From: Bigelowiella natans CCMP2755
Taxonomy: Eukaryota > Protista > Cercozoa
Direction of reading: 5' to 3'
Length of the DNA: 34,480 nucleotides
Assembly: GCA_000320545.1 (NCBI GenBank)
Contig: ADNK01000743.1
Location: forward strand, 1 to 34,480
Position 1 is the stretch's first letter; each line of letters starts with the position of its first letter. Under the pieces are notes generated by a model, which saw only the letters and a list, made by a program, of their open reading frames with translations, was not told the DNA's origin and did no database searches. Position numbers and translations under genes: made by a program. Of the stretch, positions 9,351 to 23,776 are shown in pieces.

Positions 9351-11390
9351 TGATATGGAATTACACAAGTTTTCGAAACACACACAAAGAATACGCATAG
9401 AGGAGCGCTTTCCTCTTTGGTTAGTGATATTTTGCCCCTATCATATCTCTCCGAGACGAATTACTGCCAAACAGCCTCCCGCTAGCGACCAATGGACAGC
9501 CCTCCGCCCCCCCCCCCGCGCAACCTACCGAGTAAAGCTCGAAAGCGTCCTCCCCGAAAACATCGGGGCCGATGAGACTTGCTTCGTAGCCTTTCATTAC
9601 TGATAAAGAGAATATGCGAAAAAAGAAGAGAACTCTGATGAATGAATGCCCTTGACGATATGATCTGGGAAAGAGGGAGGGAACGACACTAGCTGCCTTT
9701 CACTTATGCACGCCATATTTATCTTCCGCACGGGCATACAAAGCACATCTCGACAGCAAGTATCGTGCAAAGCAACCTGTGATAAATGGGGCGGGTTTCG
9801 GGCAGGGAGCATCTATCGGGTCAACCTGGAAGTAGTTGACGGAAGATGATGACGGTGGTGATGATAGATTCATTCTACTACGATACCATCACATGCTATT
9901 TCTTGTTGGGGATATATCGTGAAATAAGAGCAGCAAGCAGTAAAACAGAAAGGGGCCGGAAAAGCAAAAAAGGGTTGTTCACAATAACAATAGTAATTAT
10001 CGAGATGGCAAGAAGAGAGGGAGGCGTGGACGTACCTCTTGTAGGGGGGAGAGATGATCAAGATGGCCTGGATGATCAACTTTCTTGTGAGTAATCTGCA
10101 TACATTAGATAGCGTGATGATTTTCATCTGAGTCAGCACTCAGAGCGAGATTCAGAGTTTGTTTCCCCCGATCTAGCGCCCTTCCCTCTCCCCACCTTCG
10201 CCAACTTTGCAGCTTCGAAATGCGTCTTTGCAGCGGGAAGTTGCGGGTTCGCTGTCGCTGTCGCTGCTTTTGATGTCAATGTTGGTGCTGGTAGCGGTGG
10301 TGATGACACGGCCGAGGAGGAAGAGGAGGGAAGAGGGGAAGATGGTACCGCACCGACACCGGCGGCATCACCGCTTGGTGATGGCGAGATGTCCTCCTAG
10401 ACACGACATTAGCACACCAAAAGACACACGCATATCCAACGTTTTTCAGCATGTGTGCCATCAACCTTTCCCAACTGCCCGTCTACATACCAACATTCGG
10501 ACTACAACAACAACAACAACAACAACAACGGGGTATTATACTGACCGTTCGGATTACAGGGCCTGGCATGAAGGGGGGCGGGAATCCATTCGAGAGCGGC
10601 TGCTTCGGGGGGGTCGGCGTTGCTGCCTCTCCTCCATTAGCCGGCGAGGGTACTGGGCTTGATGTGCCAAGAAATGAGGAGGCCGGCGATGAGACCTTAA
10701 CTGGATTTTTACCCGTGACAACCGCGCTCTCTCCAGCTTTACGTGTATTGGCCAGAAGTGGCCCATTGCCCCCTTTCATCATCATCGTCGTCATCATCCT
10801 CATCATCATCGTTACTATCATAATCACTATTAGATCTCACCACGAGTTAAATCTGCATTCAATGTCCATGGGGTACTACCTGGGACGGCTGCCATTGTCG
10901 TTGCTTCAGGTGCTTCCATTGTGGTTGCTGGTACTGCTACCTTTTCTGCTGGTACTGCTACTTCTGCTCCTGGTACTGCTACTTCTGCTCCTGGTGCTGT
11001 CGCAGCCGTCGTTGCGGGGATAGAAGCAAGGGGTGGGAGGGAAGAGGCAGTTGTTGTCGGTGCCGCTTCTCGTTCCACAGGAGGGTTGGTAGGCGGGGGG
11101 GGGGACGAGGCAGTTGCAGGTACCACCCCCGGTTGTGCTGCTGCTCCAGGGGGAATTGATGATGACGCCATCACCGGCGATACTGATGCTGATGATGCTG
11201 AAGGTTTTAAAGGAGGTAGAGCAGCTGCGCTGCTACTGCTATCCCCAAGCATCTCGGCTGCTGACTTCTTCGTTGTCGGGGTCAAGGCTCCCAACCCACC
11301 TGTATTTGTGGCTGCTGGCGATGAGACACTGGATGGATTACCGCCAGAAGCTGCATATGTACATAATGATGATGATGATGATGATGATGG

Positions 11391-11421
<31 letters not shown>

Positions 11422-14320
11422 AAGTTGTAGTGTCACATCCATTCGTCATCATCACCACAGAGTCGCTTAAGATCATATTTGATTCAGGACGGCTGTTAGA
11501 GGAGGTTGTAGCTAACTAGCTGGGGAGGGGGGGAAGGGGTGAAATGCATGTTTGAGTAGAATTTAGTAAGATCTTACTGGAGTCGACAACGCTGCTGCTG
11601 CTACTGCAGCATTTCTTCTCCTTCGTAATGGAGTCGACGCCGTTACAGCATTTGGCGTTGCAGCATTTGCAGCATTTTTTCCCCTCTGAGGACTCCTCGT
11701 CGTCATCATCATCACCACCTATGGAGGACAGCCTTCGAAGCTTTTTCGTAAGCTTGCCGAGACTGCCCTCCAGCATCTGGACACGGAGATCGAGGTCGTT
11801 TATCGACGCCAAAGTAGATCCTAAAACAATACCATTCATCATTATCATCATCATCATCATCATCATCATCGTTGCCTATCAACATCATTCTAGCAGAAAG
11901 AATGAGAACCAAAAAAAAGGGTCATCGTCCGTATCCCCGACGATGAAGATAATCTATTGCTTTTTAGCTAGCACCTATAGGAGTTGCTGCTGTTATGTTG
12001 TAGCTGAGCGCGTTTTCTCTTGTCAAAATCTTCTGTAGAGGAGGATGACTTAGGGCAGTATAAGTCTCCCCGAGATTCGTTCCCGGATGACCAGTAGGTA
12101 GAGAGGCAGTCGCAGGTGTCGCAGCCGTCGTTGCGGGGATAGAAGCAAGGGGTGTGAGGGAAGAGGCAGTCGTTGTCGGTGCCGCTTCTCGTTCCACAGG
12201 AGGGTTGGTAGGAGGGGGGGGAGATGAGGCAGTTGCAGGCGTCGATACCACCGCCGCGGGAGCAGAAGCTGGAGGCGGGGGAGAAGAGGCTGCTACCACC
12301 GCCGCCGCCGCAGGAGTAGAAGCAGGAGGTGGGGGAGGAGAGGAATTCGTAGGTGCTGTCACCACCGCCGTGGGAGTAGAAGCAGGGGGTGGGGGTGGAG
12401 AAGCTGCCGATGCCGCCACCACCGCAACAGGAGAAGTGGCAGGAGGGGAAGGAAGTGGTGCAGGTGCAGCTACCACCCCTGCAGGAGTAGAAGCAGGAGG
12501 TGGGGGAAGAGAGGAATTCATAGGTGCTGTCACCACCGCCGCGGGAGTAGAAGCAGGAGGTGGGGGTGGAGAAGCTGCCGATGCCGCACCACGGGGGGGG
12601 AAGGGGCGGTGTGCAGGTGCGCGCTACCGCCGTCACAGGGGAAGAAGCAGGAGGTGGGGGAAGAGATGAATTTGTAGGTGTTACCACCACCGCCGCAGCA
12701 GTAGAAGCAGGAGGTGGAGAGGAGGCAGTTGCTGCCGGTGCCGCCACTATCGCTGCAGGGGTTGAGACAGGAGGTGGGGGAGGAGAAGCTACCGTCGCCG
12801 CCGCCAATACCTCAGGAGAAGAGGCAGGAGGGGCGGAGGGAGGAGTTGCTGATGCCGCAACCCCTGCCACAGGAGAAGTGGTAGTTGCAGGAGGAGAAGC
12901 GGGAGGGGGGGACGATGCCACAACCTCCCCCGCCCCCTCTGCAACCTCTTCCGGAATAACTGCTTCTTGGACTTCCTCTGCAGCCTCTTCTGCGACCTCT
13001 TCCGCAGGGAGAGAAGCTGGGGCTGGGGCTGGGGGAGAGGAAGAAGCGGGAGTTACGCTGTTTGCAACCCTGCTCACCACCTCCTCAACTGTCTCTGGAG
13101 GAGAATCTTCCGGGAGCTGCTTGTGGACTGAATGGAGTTTATGCTGCGGATGACTTGGAGGGTTAGTACTCCCTCTTATTCCACGAGGTAGGCTGGTGCT
13201 GTTGATTGGTCCTTCTTCGAGAGACACGAAGGCAGCATGGCGAGCGACCTCAACCTTTTCGTACAGATAGTACCATTTAAAATTTGTTAATAGGAATATA
13301 CTTTTTTCTATTTCTTTAAAATTTCTTCTTAATGTTTTTTTCCCCAATTTTTTTCAATATACTCTTTTATTTAGTAAAGTATATTGTATTTACTGTTTAT
13401 ACGATTCAAGCACATGAAGTCTCAGGGAAGAAAAGGTGGTTCGTGCATGGAACGACTCTATTTTTCTGTGAGTTTGACTATCAACGGCAACCTGCTGCAC
13501 CAACTTCTGAGCGTCCGCAACGCTGCTCTCAATCTTGGAAAATATCATAATAAAGGGACGAAAAATTAAAAGTTTGTTCTTCTGCAGCAGCCCACTGCAT
13601 TCAGTAGCAGCATAGTTTCCACTAAACACCAATACCCCTACCCATAGATATATCTTGCTAGACCGACACATCAAAACGACTAAAGATGTTTGAGTTGGGG
13701 CATTTACGTACGTCTTCGTAAAGTTCCTTAATCTTTGCCTTTGCGGAGTCGCCGGTACTCATCGAGCTTGGAGAAGAAGGCTGATCGTCGGTCACATTGA
13801 TAATTACTTGATGTACGAGAGGGTCTTGCTTCGCTGCTTCCAGTCTGCGAACGATAGAAAGTGACAGACATTCAGAGGCTACGATAGGAACTGAGAATGA
13901 TTGCACCCACATTTCCTTAACGTCTCTGTCGAGGAGTATTTCATCGGCTATGCTGTCCCAATGAGCTTTTCCTTTCTCCCCACGACCGTGCATGGCCTCA
14001 CTGTCAAGTAGCCTGTTATCAAGAATGTGGAGCTTGATGTGCTCTATTCCTGGAATCTTCGAGGATTCTTTAGGTAGGATTCTGCAAGAAATCAAAGCAA
14101 AAAATGTTAGTATGCGAGTTCGTCAGAGTCATAACACAAAAGTCGAAGAAATGTCGCGTTAATCACTGCATGCAGGCTTATTAAATCCACCTGAATCTCC
14201 CTGAGACCGGGTGCCCAGACATAGTCCCGTTGACACCAACAAACATGCCTGCAAATAAAAGAAAACCTGCGAGGGTTTCCACCGTCCTTGCAAGCATTGT
14301 TCTCGTTTGTCCCTTCATAT
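7150..14320 (-). CDS. Large multi-exon protein of unknown function: long Pro/Ala/Ser/Thr-rich repeat region and a C-terminal globular region weakly resembling a discoidin/galactose-binding-like fold
   Basis: Phase-compatible exons run from IPGIEHIKLHILDNR...KELYED|IESSVADAQKLVQQ|VEVARH through PAST-rich exons (12090-13250, 10880-11350) to ...MKGYEASLIGPDVFGEDAFELYS|DRKYKITGEDF...|GYIFAWNDQFPE|TPQQRAPKGWELYGV|GNTELGEG...|DMNPEEQLRLVNEEIFQDFDPPGQDD* (stop 7150-7152). The 5' end is ambiguous (about 14300-14740). There is an apparent frameshift near 12585-12625. Confidence 0.75.
7821..7928. repeat. Compound microsatellite (AC)n-(AT)n-(GT)n, self-complementary, intronic
   Basis: Read directly; the AC arm is the reverse complement of the GT arm. 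Confidence 0.95.
10998..11120. repeat. Copy 1 of a 123-bp near-identical coding duplication (copy 2 at 12117-12239)
   Basis: Both copies encode PATASSPPPPTNPPVEREAAPTTTASSL(P/T)PLASIPATTAAT on the - strand, with only a few substitutions. Confidence 0.95.
12117..12920. repeat. Copy 2 of the 123-bp duplication, followed by a degenerate ~55-60-bp coding tandem repeat (SSPPPPASTPAAVV-type units)
   Basis: Recurring gcaggagtagaagcaggaggtggggg-like cores at roughly 60-bp spacing. Confidence 0.9.
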
Positions 14321-18881: not shown

Positions 18882-19429
18882 GACTACAACCAGAATGCAT
18901 GTATAGTACGATGAAATCTCCCTGTCCCTCCTCTGTATCTCGATGGCGATTGATCTAAACATTATCCAAGGATTGGAGTGGAGTGAGGATTATGTGGTGG
19001 TGGGCGGCTACTAGTGCCAAGTGGTAGCAAGCACGGGATGATATTGATCAATTAATAAAATATTCAGTGTGTTATGCTGTGTGTGTGTGCGCGCGCGCGC
19101 GCATATTAATTATTTAGGTCGCAGTTTCACACATACTAAGGCAATGTTTAGTTGATATTTTGAGCTGTAGCTGTAGTCGTGTGCTCTCTTACTACCGCAT
19201 CAGCAATCTCAGTCACCGCTGTTTCCCCCACGGGGAAATCGAAGTACCACAAACCGGGCGCCGTCGCGTTGGCAGCGTAGCACTGGCGCGGGGGAAGTCC
19301 TGACATGGAGGATGGGAGACCTTCCCGAGGGAGAAGAGGTTATTGTTGTTTGAATAGCAGCACATCGAGAAATCGTAAAATTTTAGGATTCGATGATTCC
19401 TTTAATAGGCACTTCAGAGCGCTACATTG

Positions 19430-19477
<48 letters not shown>

Positions 19478-19478
19478 T

Positions 19479-19528
<50 letters not shown>

Positions 19529-19839
19529 GCCAGGATGGGGAATTGGAAGGAGAAGGACAACGGCAAGCATGTAATACATCATTCTTTATTCTGTTTTCCC
19601 GCCTTATTACCACATGTGCAGCTAGTCATTATTGCGCTCCCATTCTCCCTTCGATGACATGTTTGCGCTACGAGAGAGAACACAGCGAGCCGTCGGTTGA
19701 TTCCCGAATTATTGCCAGGGATGGGAATCAACACCGGCTTGCGAACCTCCTCGAAGCTTCCTAGCCCACCATAAAGAAGACGGTGCTTCTGGAGTGTCGA
19801 AATGGTATGGTTGACACCTGTTTGTTCGTTTATGTTTCG

Positions 19840-19883
<44 letters not shown>

Positions 19884-20689
19884 AAGTGAAAGTGCCTCGT
19901 GCTAGTTATCGGGGGGTCCTTTTGGTGGATAAATTCCGCAATATGTAATATTAAGCAGTGACCTTCACCCCAGAAGTCAAATTGATGGTTGTTTGCCTGC
20001 CCGATCCAAGTCACTAATTATACCGAAAAATGGCATGATGGTGATGGCGATGATGAAGAATCTTTTGATGTTACGGAAGCGTACAGAGAAGAGAGAAGAA
20101 ATTATCTCATCGAGGGGAACAGAAAAATGGGAGGGGGGGATGAGGGACGAACATGGTGAAGAAAGATGGGAAATATATGGCTGTGTCTCGTATATAAGAA
20201 CTAGCTCCGAACTATGAGATAACCATTGTTTGCAGCGGTTAAAGCTCGCAAAAAATGCTTCGGATCTTCGTATCTGTAGCCGCTAGAGTGCCGATCAGGA
20301 TATATGCTAGCAATACTCGATTCGTGATTCATCAGCAGAGCATCGAACCCTGTGCAATCATTCATTACCCTCACCGTTTCTCATGATGCAAATGTCAGCT
20401 AAACCTCTCAATGTTGTGAGAAGGTCTCCCCAGACGTCTTCTGGTTCGTTGACGCCCGCAATGCCCGACTTTGGGTCCGTGAAAAGGTTGAAATCACCAG
20501 TAACTCCAAAGGAAAACAAGCGCCGATTCGCCACCACTTTGGCCGCAGCCGAGGGCTTTTAGAATAATCAAAATGCATCAATTATAAGGGGTATGGAGGA
20601 TTTATGCTCCAAAGTTTGACCTGTGATCCGAAGTTGATAAGTGCAAGCATTATCATGAATCCACGAATCGCCACCCCCTCCATCGCCAT
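17477..20689 (-). CDS. CapA/PGA_cap-family protein (metallophosphoesterase fold) with signal peptide
   Basis: The spliced product has the family motifs in order: MAMEGVAIRGFMIMLALINFGSQ|PSAA (signal), FGVTGDFNL, PEDVWGDLL, LMNHE, QANNHQFDFWGEG, LYGGLG, YAANATAPG, VLYMHSGPNFEWNP, VDMIWGTSSHHIQ, PIIYGVGDL, FRPEISVVY, FTVNHA, ending ...DGSIWVLRPGRKG*. Confidence 0.88.
19432..19522. repeat. Compound microsatellite (CT)n-(CA)n-(GA)n, self-complementary arms, intronic
   Basis: Read directly. Confidence 0.95.
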
Positions 20690-21112: not shown

Positions 21113-22342
21113 ATGATAGGCCGGCAGCGTACGGGATGGGGGACATTGGTCCCCCTTCTTCTCGCCCTGGTGGTGGCGGTGATCTTCTTGAGTGGGGGAA
21201 GCTTAAACGGAAACCTATCCCGCGGAATCGTTCGACCTCAGATTCGAGCACATGTTTCACAAGGCATGATGGTTCCGCGAGGATCCTTTGCAGCCTCAAA
21301 ATCCCAGCGGTACTCCACCTTCGTGCGATCTCAAGAAAAGCCGGAATACGAAAAGTTCATGGTCGTAATAAGAGGATATATGATAAAATTCAAGAAAGCA
21401 GCTCCTGAGATATGTATGCTGATTTCAGGATTCTCCCATTGGAAACTTCATTCAGGGACTGTCGAAGTCCCTCTCCTCTGGGTTCATGGGACAGGGAAAA
21501 GTCGCAATGATCAAAGCTATGGCAGGCGAGTATGATGAAGCAAAAACACAAGCCTCTATTGACAGGTAAGCAAGAACAAAAAGTCCAAATTTGCACCTAC
21601 TAATTAAATGATTACTCAGCTACATCAAGGACAACAAAGTCGTGATGTTCAGCTTCACTAAATGACCCTTCTGGTATCGCAAACCACACAGAGAATGACA
21701 TAAAATTTTAGTCTGAAAATTTTCTGCTATTGTTTGCCGGTTCTCACGTAATTTACTCTATAAATGCAGCCTGAAAGCGAAGGCTCTTCTGGAGGAGAAG
21801 GGCGCTAGCTTTCAGGCCATTGAACTCGATCAGATGGGAGGTCCTACCAACTACTACTTCTTGACCATATTCCTTGTAGACTTTTTTTACAATAGTACGC
21901 AATATCATATTTGCACATGTTTTTGGATTTTTCTCGCGAACCTAACTCCTTCTTGAAACACAAAGATGAGGGGAAAGCCCTCCGAGCACAGCTAGGTGTG
22001 ATGACGGGTCGCACCAGGTAATAGTTGGTATTAAACTTATGCTGTTTATTTGCTACTCTTGTGACTGCTTCAAACATCCTCACCACAATTATACTATCCT
22101 GGCATGATACTAAATCAATTCTCTTATAAGCGTGCCGAACATCTGGATCGATGGTGAAGGAATTGGCGGCTGCAACGATGGGCCCGGTGATGAATGAGAA
22201 CATTTCTAATACCGCAATCGTACTCCTGTACTAATTTGTGTATCGTGTGGTACCTTTCTAATTACAAATATATTCAGGTATTATGACCCTTGACCGAGAG
22301 GGTAAGCTGGATCCCCTGCTGAAGGCAGCTGGAGCACTCTAG
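21113..22342 (+). CDS. GRX: Selenocysteine-containing glutaredoxin (UPFC active site) with bipartite signal + transit-like leader; 227 aa
   Basis: Exons 21113-21361, 21429-21565, 21620-21673, 21770-21840, 21966-22017, 22131-22186, 22278-22342 (684 nt; all introns GT-AG, phases consistent). Product: MIGRQRTGWGTLVPLLLALVVAVIFLSGG...AGEYDEAKTQASIDSYIKDNKVVMFSFTK-U(TGA 21663-21665)-PFCLKAKALLEEKGASFQAIELDQMGDEGKALRAQLGVMTGRTSVPNIWIDGEGIGGCNDGPGIMTLDREGKLDPLLKAAGAL*. The class I Grx motifs SVP and GGCND are intact downstream of the TGA. Confidence 0.95.
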
Positions 22343-22428
22343 ACGGATGATCAAGACAGCCAACACCAACGGTGTTTAAAGCAAGCTTTTCTCCAAATAT
22401 ATCTTGCAACAAGCTCTTGCGATTGATC

Positions 22429-22555
22429 CAGGTCCATGCATATGATCGCTATGATGCTAAAACAATCCTTCGGGTCGCCTTTCGATAGTGCCATTTTCTC
22501 ATAATGGTGCATCATCATGGCTAGCTTCATAGCGGGAGAAACCCTTGTGGACCTG
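22429..22555 (+). promoter_or_regulatory. SECIS-like element in the glutaredoxin 3' UTR
   Basis: Helix I: CAGGTCCA (22429-22436) pairs with TGGACCTG (22548-22555). Core: ATGA (22442-22445) opposite GA (22536-22537). Helix II: CGCTATGA-T-GCTA pairs with TAGC-T-TCATAGCG. An AAAA run (22459-22462) sits at the top of helix II. The apical region is about 60 nt, longer than canonical. Confidence 0.8.
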
Positions 22556-23776
22556 AACTCGTATCTGAGCCGCACAGACGTATTGATAGGAAGCGTGTGA
22601 TGAACACAGGTGTATGTCGAATTCTATCTTAACAATGCTCCATACGCTACATATATATTTTCTATAGCCTATATAATGCTTAGGTTATAAACACGAGAAA
22701 TGGCATAAAATAACGACGAAGTCGTTCAGATGCATGTGTCTAGATGTGCGCAGCTCGCCCAAAGCACATCGGAAGCACAAAATGGCATGATTATGTGGTT
22801 GTTATGTAGTTACGCACGCGCGATGATTGCCACGGTAGTAGGACTAGCTGCAAGGGTTTGCGTACGCTAGTCACTCGTGCTCATCGTGCACGTTGAATCC
22901 CACGCAAAATGACCGCATGCATCGTCCAGCCAGATTGCTCGCCAGACACGAATTCTAGAATTCCCATTCACTGTGACATCACAAATCTGAAATGCTGGTC
23001 AGTGAACCATTGCATCATTTTGCCCAGCTAGCCTTCTACCAAGGTACCACTGACAAAATGTGCACATTGTGCATGTTGCAATGTGCACTGTGCGCTTGTG
23101 GCATTGTCTAGGCACGGTGTTGTCCTGGTGCATTGCTGGATTGGCTTCCGATGCCGCACACGCGGACTGCAAACATTTTTTCAGAGGTCTAAGCCTTTGA
23201 CTTTTTTGTCTTTGGGTGCCTGACAATTGGCATTCATTTCCATGTCAAATCAAATTCTCATGTTTGTTGTCTGAGCTAACTGACGATTCCTTTGCGGCAA
23301 TGAAGGGCATTGCCTGCTGTCCTGCTCTCTTTGAATGGCTTCGTCCATGCGAGCTTCTCTTTCAGATGGAATGACCACGATCCCCACAACAACTGCGGGC
23401 ATTGTGTCTGCGATCTCGCAGTCCGTTGATGCGCATGCCTACACTCAGTGTCAGCCGCGCATCACGGGAGCTGAGCACTCAAATCAACCATCCGGTAGCT
23501 CGCTAAACGGGACCACAGATGGATTTACTGCGTCAAAGGAGTTTTGTTGTCGCACATGCAAATCATCAGAGGTACACCACATTTCGGAAGAGGGGTACAC
23601 ACGCGATGCCACCCGAGCGATGTACGGAAGAAATAAATACCGGGAGTATGTCGTAGATTTTGGACATTTAATGGCATTTTTACCTGAGCGACATCTGTAA
23701 TATCCGATTTAAGGAAAACATCACCTTCTGGCCTTCCAACAGGGGCACATAAAACCCCAAAACCCAAGAGCTACCA

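Follow-up and report, generated by a model that had tools for sequence, protein, structure and literature searches.

Does the in-frame TGA in a glutaredoxin-like gene of the chlorarachniophyte Bigelowiella natans CCMP2755 disable this gene, or is it read as selenocysteine (Sec)? The question is raised by positions 1 to 34,480 of contig ADNK01000743.1 (assembly GCA_000320545.1), the whole stretch of 34,480 nucleotides (nt) that was analyzed here and is called the window. An earlier reading of its letters (the original prediction) had proposed a Sec-glutaredoxin with a selenocysteine insertion sequence (SECIS) in the 3' untranslated region (UTR), and this reading was supported by every part of it that could be checked. 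On the comparisons reported below, the locus is very probably a functional nuclear gene of B. natans for a class I (dithiol-type) glutaredoxin in which the N-terminal nucleophilic Cys is replaced by Sec (U-P-F-C).

Sequence reading and per-exon translation gave a seven-exon gene on the + strand, 21113-22342, whose product consists of a leader followed by a class I glutaredoxin. All introns are of the GT..AG type, 54-125 nt long and with consistent phases. The TGA at 21663-21665 is the sole in-frame stop before the gene end and stands in the context ..KVVMFSFTK-[TGA]-PF-C.., the Cys codon that follows TGA-PF being split TG/C by intron 3. The parts of the gene are as follows.

21113-21361, + strand: exon 1, from the first ATG after an in-frame TAA (21080), coding for 83 amino acids.
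21429-21565, + strand: exon 2, a conserved pre-domain helix region, ..GQGKVAMIKAMAGEYDEAKTQASID.., present in Cys homologues too.
21620-21673, + strand: exon 3, the active-site exon, ..YIKDNKVVMFSFTK-TGA-PF-C(TG/), with the putative Sec codon TGA at 21663-21665.
21770-21840, + strand: exon 4, (C)LKAKALLEEKGASFQAIELDQMG, with a match to PF00462.
21966-22017, + strand: exon 5, DEGKALRAQLGVMTGRT(S), placed by alignment to the mRNA L028.
22131-22186, + strand: exon 6, (S)VPNIWIDGEGIGGCNDGP, with the glutathione-site motifs (T/S)VP and GGxxD.
22278-22342, + strand: coding part of exon 7, GIMTLDREGKLDPLLKAAGAL, followed by the stop TAG at 22340-22342.
22343-22648, + strand: 3' UTR (minimum length), intronless, positions 623-983 of L028 forming a single block on 22277-22648.

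L028 is a 1032-nt spliced mRNA of a close relative. It aligned to the window in seven blocks, the ends of which are the proposed exon borders, so that all six junctions were confirmed; together with the per-exon translation, these blocks bear out the claim of a seven-exon model in which the TGA is the only in-frame stop. Its alignment to exon 1 covers 21118-21362, and exon 3 is identical to it at 57 of 57 positions, TGA included. It is exceedingly improbable that the codon is really TGC or TGT and was misread in sequencing or assembly, given that an independently sequenced relative carries TGA here and that this codon is found in all other orthologues as well.

The exon 1 product has a signal-peptide-like hydrophobic segment (about residues 10-27) followed by a basic Ser/Arg-rich segment. 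A search with the exon 1 protein returned no matches. This segment is conserved in the orthologue P0004, including the segment ..SQEKPEYEKFM/DSP.. that spans the junction of exons 1 and 2, and the leader is conserved in both P0004 and P0006. It is presumed to be a bipartite plastid-type leader of chlorarachniophytes, and plastid or periplastid targeting would follow from its sequence features.

The TGA is not peculiar to B. natans. A search with exon 2 led to an open reading frame (ORF) of Lotharella oceanica in the MMETSP data ending in ..VVMFSFTR, and a search with the latter led to more ORFs, all ending at the same position; one of these ORFs is filed at NCBI as a "hypothetical protein" of Amorphochlora amoebiformis. 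Nine transcript contigs, which represent at least six lineages of chlorarachniophytes, have TGA followed by PFC. All read ..FSF(T/S)(K/R)-TGA-PFC.., and in each of the nine the frame after the TGA runs for 82-84 residues to a real stop. The Amorphochlora genome reads TGA CCC TTC TG/gt; there, the intron phase and the split of the Cys codon are as in the window, and all later exons are intact. In the same genome (L029), tblastn showed second, more diverged partial copies of the exon-2 region at 10376-10450, 10597-10650, 10905-10979 and 11056-11109; they sit within introns of the Amorphochlora glutaredoxin gene, as possible pseudo-exons or alternative exons.

From exon 2 to the stop, the window and L028 differ by 17 synonymous and 5 non-synonymous changes (9 and 2, respectively, in exon 2; 8 and 3 after the TGA), and the post-TGA pieces of L028 and of the more distant mRNA L025 are 63% identical in a gapless alignment. 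These values indicate that the coding region beyond the TGA is under purifying selection. They bear directly on the possibility that the locus is a pseudogene, that is, a Cys-glutaredoxin in which a recent nonsense mutation (TGC or TGT to TGA) hit the active site. Pseudogenes are commonly recognized by an in-frame stop within a conserved domain, and Rfam detects no SECIS here; but the TGA is common to at least six lineages and two genomes, the frame past it is open and changes mostly at synonymous positions, the mRNAs are expressed in many transcriptomes, and a SECIS-like fold (described below) is conserved. A pseudogene is thus highly improbable.

The identity of the encoded protein was established by family searches with naturally spliced mRNAs of relatives, divided into two pieces at the TGA. 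The piece of L028 downstream of this codon (L028:437-684, at least 95% identical to the exons of the window) matched PF00462 with 47.8 bits over profile positions 10-60, and that of L025 with 40.6 bits, the cut-off being 22.9 bits. Exon 4 alone gave 16.9 bits (E 0.0075) with the same profile and matches residues 16-34 of E. coli Grx3, which lie directly after the CPYC of that protein. Against solved class I glutaredoxins, the part after the TGA gave E values of 1e-11 to 1e-13 across its whole length. The alignment to E. coli Grx3 starts at residue 12 (Pro12), and the TGA codon is one position before the aligned Pro, so that the active-site motif would read U-P-F-C, equivalent to the CxxC-type site at the N-terminus of helix 1. 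Further downstream, RTSVPNIWI and IGGCNDGP align with the glutathione-binding motifs TVPNVFI and IGGCDD of the solved glutaredoxins. The profile score of the L028 piece, the purifying selection and the open frame agree with the earlier statement that the glutaredoxin fold is intact downstream of the TGA. It must be noted that a six-frame PF00462 search of the genome missed the gene because its exons are too short.

What the codon stands for is indicated by the Cys homologues. Proteins with CPFC and the subfamily signature GGCNDGPG were found, including one of Chlorella ohadii. In their alignment with the split pieces (A2), exactly one column is left vacant between the end of the N-terminal pieces and the start of the C-terminal pieces, and it is here that the Chlorella ohadii protein and other homologues have the first Cys of CPFC. 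In B. natans itself, a glutaredoxin paralogue with CEFC aligns likewise, with its Cys in the vacant column. The placement of the TGA at the first Cys of CPFC was thereby confirmed by A2 and by the Grx3 alignment from Pro12, and a search for Sec/Cys pairs at this column, which had been proposed as a check, yielded CPFC homologues that place Cys exactly there. No second copy of the gene was found in the genome by DNA search; therefore, there is no Sec/Cys paralogue pair like that in F. cylindrus.

Public protein calls for the family either end at the TGA or come as separate N- and C-terminal ORFs, as in P0003 (Amorphochlora AAMO2058_000392200, 97 amino acids), P0002 (UniRef A0A7S2TYQ9, Lotharella oceanica) and P0007-P0013, and no full-length record was found among the public protein records. 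The truncation by standard gene finders that had been anticipated is thus seen in the orthologues. The same calls could be taken to mean that UGA is a true stop, giving only a 143-residue N-terminal product, with the glutaredoxin part untranslated or made from an internal start, since exactly two such pieces are what automatic ORF calling yields from the orthologous mRNAs. Nevertheless, the pieces always lie in one frame and are separated by one codon at the column of the catalytic Cys, the N-terminal piece alone matches no Pfam domain, and a glutaredoxin devoid of strand 1 and of its nucleophile would be non-functional. We regard termination at this codon as very improbable, and favor its reading as Sec.

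Sec insertion requires a dedicated machinery, for which the genome was also inspected. It contains a tRNA-Sec (68.5 bits, cut-off 47; anticodon TCA) and exons of SepSecS and of SelD/SPS. A SelB-like GTPase at G000:C2539:68378-69268 scored 184 bits over model positions 1-273, which is below the bacterial cut-off of the model, the next translational GTPases reaching 106 bits; judged by these scores, it is a likely eEFSec gene. Thus, of the Sec factors whose presence had been proposed as a check, tRNA-Sec and SepSecS were found, with SelD in addition, and for the elongation factor the evidence is a GTPase consistent with eEFSec at a score below that bacterial cut-off. Several GPx genes of the genome also carry an in-frame TGA, one of them reading NVASK-TGA-G (NVASKUG). 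In addition, the sole match of the Rfam SECIS_1 model in the genome (24.8 bits, canonical form) is at positions 1501-1571 of L002 (G000:C970), about 130 nt downstream of an ORF ending in ..APKDEL* (ORF end at about 1368); exons upstream of it encode a thioredoxin/PDI-like sequence (..GWPTIKYF..), and the locus is probably a PDI-type selenoprotein resident in the endoplasmic reticulum.

About 100 nt past the TAG, the 3' UTR contains a hairpin with the following parts.

22429-22555, + strand: SECIS-like element, defined by a pair list, with a constrained fold of -31.2 kcal/mol.
22429-22438 with 22546-22555, + strand: helix I, 10 bp, followed by a 3-nt loop.
22442-22445 (AUGA) opposite 22536-22537 (GA), + strand: SECIS core.
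22446-22459 with 22522-22535, + strand: helix II, 13 of 14 positions paired.
22460-22462, + strand: unpaired AAA.
22465-22475, + strand: mini-stem (helix III).
22477-22521, + strand: extra hairpin of 45 nt, between the mini-stem and the 3' arm of helix II.

A strict pattern-plus-pairing scan of both strands of the window returned this element as its sole match, and none was obtained in 40 dinucleotide shuffles. The z-score of its minimum free energy was -3.96, and none of 200 shuffles reached an equally good fold. The background of the fold-based scan was about one comparable match per 69 kb; an example of it is a weak SECIS-like candidate on the minus strand of the window at about 328-370 (ATGA, 11-bp helix II, 5-bp helix I, -2.5 kcal/mol), which may be due to chance.

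The fold is kept in L028 (776-890), with 91.5% of the cells paired. The window and L028 do not differ in the core, the 5' arm of helix II, the AAAA or the mini-stem, against about 82% identity in the remaining UTR. The differences cluster in the extra hairpin, in which G-C and U-A replace two G-U pairs. Two other orthologous glutaredoxin mRNAs carry comparable elements, both missed by Rfam: L031 (941-1043) has a perfect 13-bp helix II, an apical part of about 70 nt and AUGA/AAA/GA, and L036 (724-778) has AUGA/AAA/GA in an element of normal type II size, with G after the 3' GA.

Several observations weigh against this element being a working SECIS. Rfam SECIS_1 (RF00031) gave no match at E<=10 in the window or in any orthologous mRNA. 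There are 62 nt between the arms of helix II, far above the usual apical size, and SECISearch3 discards candidates with an over-long apical loop (PMC3753652). The 3' core reads G-GA-G, with G as the base after GA, the SECIS consensus at this site being KGAW, i.e., A or U after GA (PMC3753652). The element thus departs from the canonical type I/II form in both apical length and 3' core. The changes between the window and L028 are only one-sided, with no double compensatory changes, so proof by covariation is lacking. Finally, neither L025 nor L035 showed a SECIS-like element and L026 had no convincing one, the 3' UTRs of all three being short and possibly truncated; in Amorphochlora, only a weak one was found. 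The expectation of a SECIS hairpin after the TAG thus held as to its hallmarks at 22429-22555 and its uniqueness in the window; as to form, it is non-canonical and escapes Rfam SECIS_1.

The silence of Rfam is weak evidence against function in this organism, because the model also misses the elements of L031, of L036 and of a GPx gene. In this genome it gave one weak match genome-wide and none at four GPx selenoprotein loci. A strict SECIS scan of the GPx loci found nothing convincing either, and a fold-based scan was needed. On the minus strand of L021 (G000:C3223), a GPx gene has its active-site exon at about 1530-1520 and its stop at about 441, and a SECIS-like element lies at 245-127, about 195 nt past the stop. 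This element has AUGA, a 12-bp helix II, AAA, a CCCCC/GGGGG mini-stem, about 75 nt of extra hairpins and a G-GA-U core; its 114-nt interior shows an oversized, branched apical design, as in the glutaredoxin element.

These results are relevant to the possibility that the gene encodes a selenoprotein and 22429-22555 is not its working SECIS, either with the true element at another place in the 3' UTR or with just a sub-structure in use. The oversized apical domain, the G at the W position and the lack of an Rfam match speak for it, as does an alternative register in which the 3' GA is placed at 22538-22539 and which folds at -26.9 kcal/mol. On the other hand, no other candidate was found in the 3' UTR or in the window, L028 shows no change in the core, helix II and AAA while the remaining UTR is only about 82% identical, and the same design recurs in the L031 and L036 mRNAs and in one GPx gene of the genome. 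In view of both sets of observations, we consider a SECIS other than this hairpin unlikely. A different idea, in which the apical loop is an intron and the SECIS is assembled by splicing, was rejected because the mature L028 mRNA keeps the whole apical part.

Based on this glutaredoxin gene, its L031 orthologue and one B. natans GPx gene, we tentatively suggest, as something that could about as easily prove wrong, that SECIS elements of chlorarachniophytes commonly have large branched apical insertions (three-way or multi-way junctions, 60-100 nt) which their Sec factors tolerate or use. Standard models, such as Rfam and SECISearch3 with its length filters, would then miss them, and the selenoprotein gene numbers published for Rhizaria (23 for B. 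natans) would be underestimates.

With the 22429-22555 hairpin as the SECIS of a Sec-glutaredoxin, the gene would be expressed as follows. The UGA at 21663-21665 would be decoded as Sec through the eukaryotic Sec pathway, with Sec-tRNA made by means of tRNA-Sec and SepSecS/SelD, and with an eEFSec/SBP2-type factor recruited by the element; translation would then run to the UAG at 22340. The SECIS would act through a kink-turn core (AUGA/GA), a 14-position helix II, the unpaired AAA and the mini-stem, as in type II, and the 45-nt hairpin on the 3' side of the apical loop would create a three-way junction. The expected reaction of the enzyme is the reduction of glutathione-mixed disulfides, in which a selenolate would attack in place of a thiolate, and the N-terminal leader of the protein, which resembles a signal plus transit peptide, may deliver it to the complex plastid or the surrounding compartments.

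Elsewhere in the window, positions 12001-13000 are GC-rich (62.5% GC) and overlap a 459-amino-acid ORF on the minus strand (11968-13347), and dinucleotide microsatellites (CT/GA, CA/TG) at 19300-20000 are visible as SLSL/THTH/RERE pseudo-ORFs.

With this gene, B. natans and the chlorarachniophytes in general gain a well-supported selenoprotein, and a distinct subfamily of glutaredoxins (GGCNDGPG) gains a clean Sec/Cys pair. The closest Cys forms are those of green algae, which would fit an enzyme derived from the endosymbiont and directed to the plastid. Surveys demanding a canonical SECIS would miss such genes in Rhizaria, because a SECIS with an extra hairpin is invisible to Rfam.

With respect to known systems, the solved class I dithiol glutaredoxins (E. 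coli Grx3, 1FOV/3GRX; Synechocystis ssr2061; plant GrxC/S12-type, 5ZVL and 3RHB) share the fold, the xPFC site, (T/S)VP and GGC(N/D)D with the window gene. They use a Cys nucleophile, whereas the window gene has UGA, a conserved pre-domain region of about 45 residues, the GGCNDGPG signature and an organelle-type leader. A selenoprotein glutaredoxin of Clostridium oremlandii, which reduces selenoprotein MsrA (cited in PMC4479559 and PMC4333827), has Sec for the catalytic Cys, from which it is clear that a selenolate works in a glutaredoxin active site. Bacterial recoding differs from the eukaryotic type in having the SECIS inside the coding region and in using SelB. Compared with the type II eukaryotic SECIS (RF00031; PMC3753652), the window element has the same AUGA/GA kink-turn core, helix I, internal loop, helix II of 13-14 positions, unpaired AAA and mini-stem, but differs in its 45-nt extra hairpin, its 62-nt apical part and its G instead of A or U after the 3' GA.

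The nearest parallels are the Sec-glutaredoxins reported in SAR (stramenopile, alveolate and rhizarian) algae, such as the diatom Fragilariopsis cylindrus, and in haptophytes ("The algal selenoproteomes", PMC7539508). That survey covered B. natans, with 23 selenoprotein genes, and its text names no B. natans or chlorarachniophyte GRX. Given these published proteins, this kind of algal selenoprotein is already known, and the only moderately unusual feature is the architecture of the SECIS. The window gene differs from the published algal forms in that its SECIS has the extra 45-nt hairpin and escapes the Rfam model; it resembles them in having Sec predicted for the first active-site Cys, a UGA that would be recoded through a 3' UTR SECIS, and Cys homologues in other algae.

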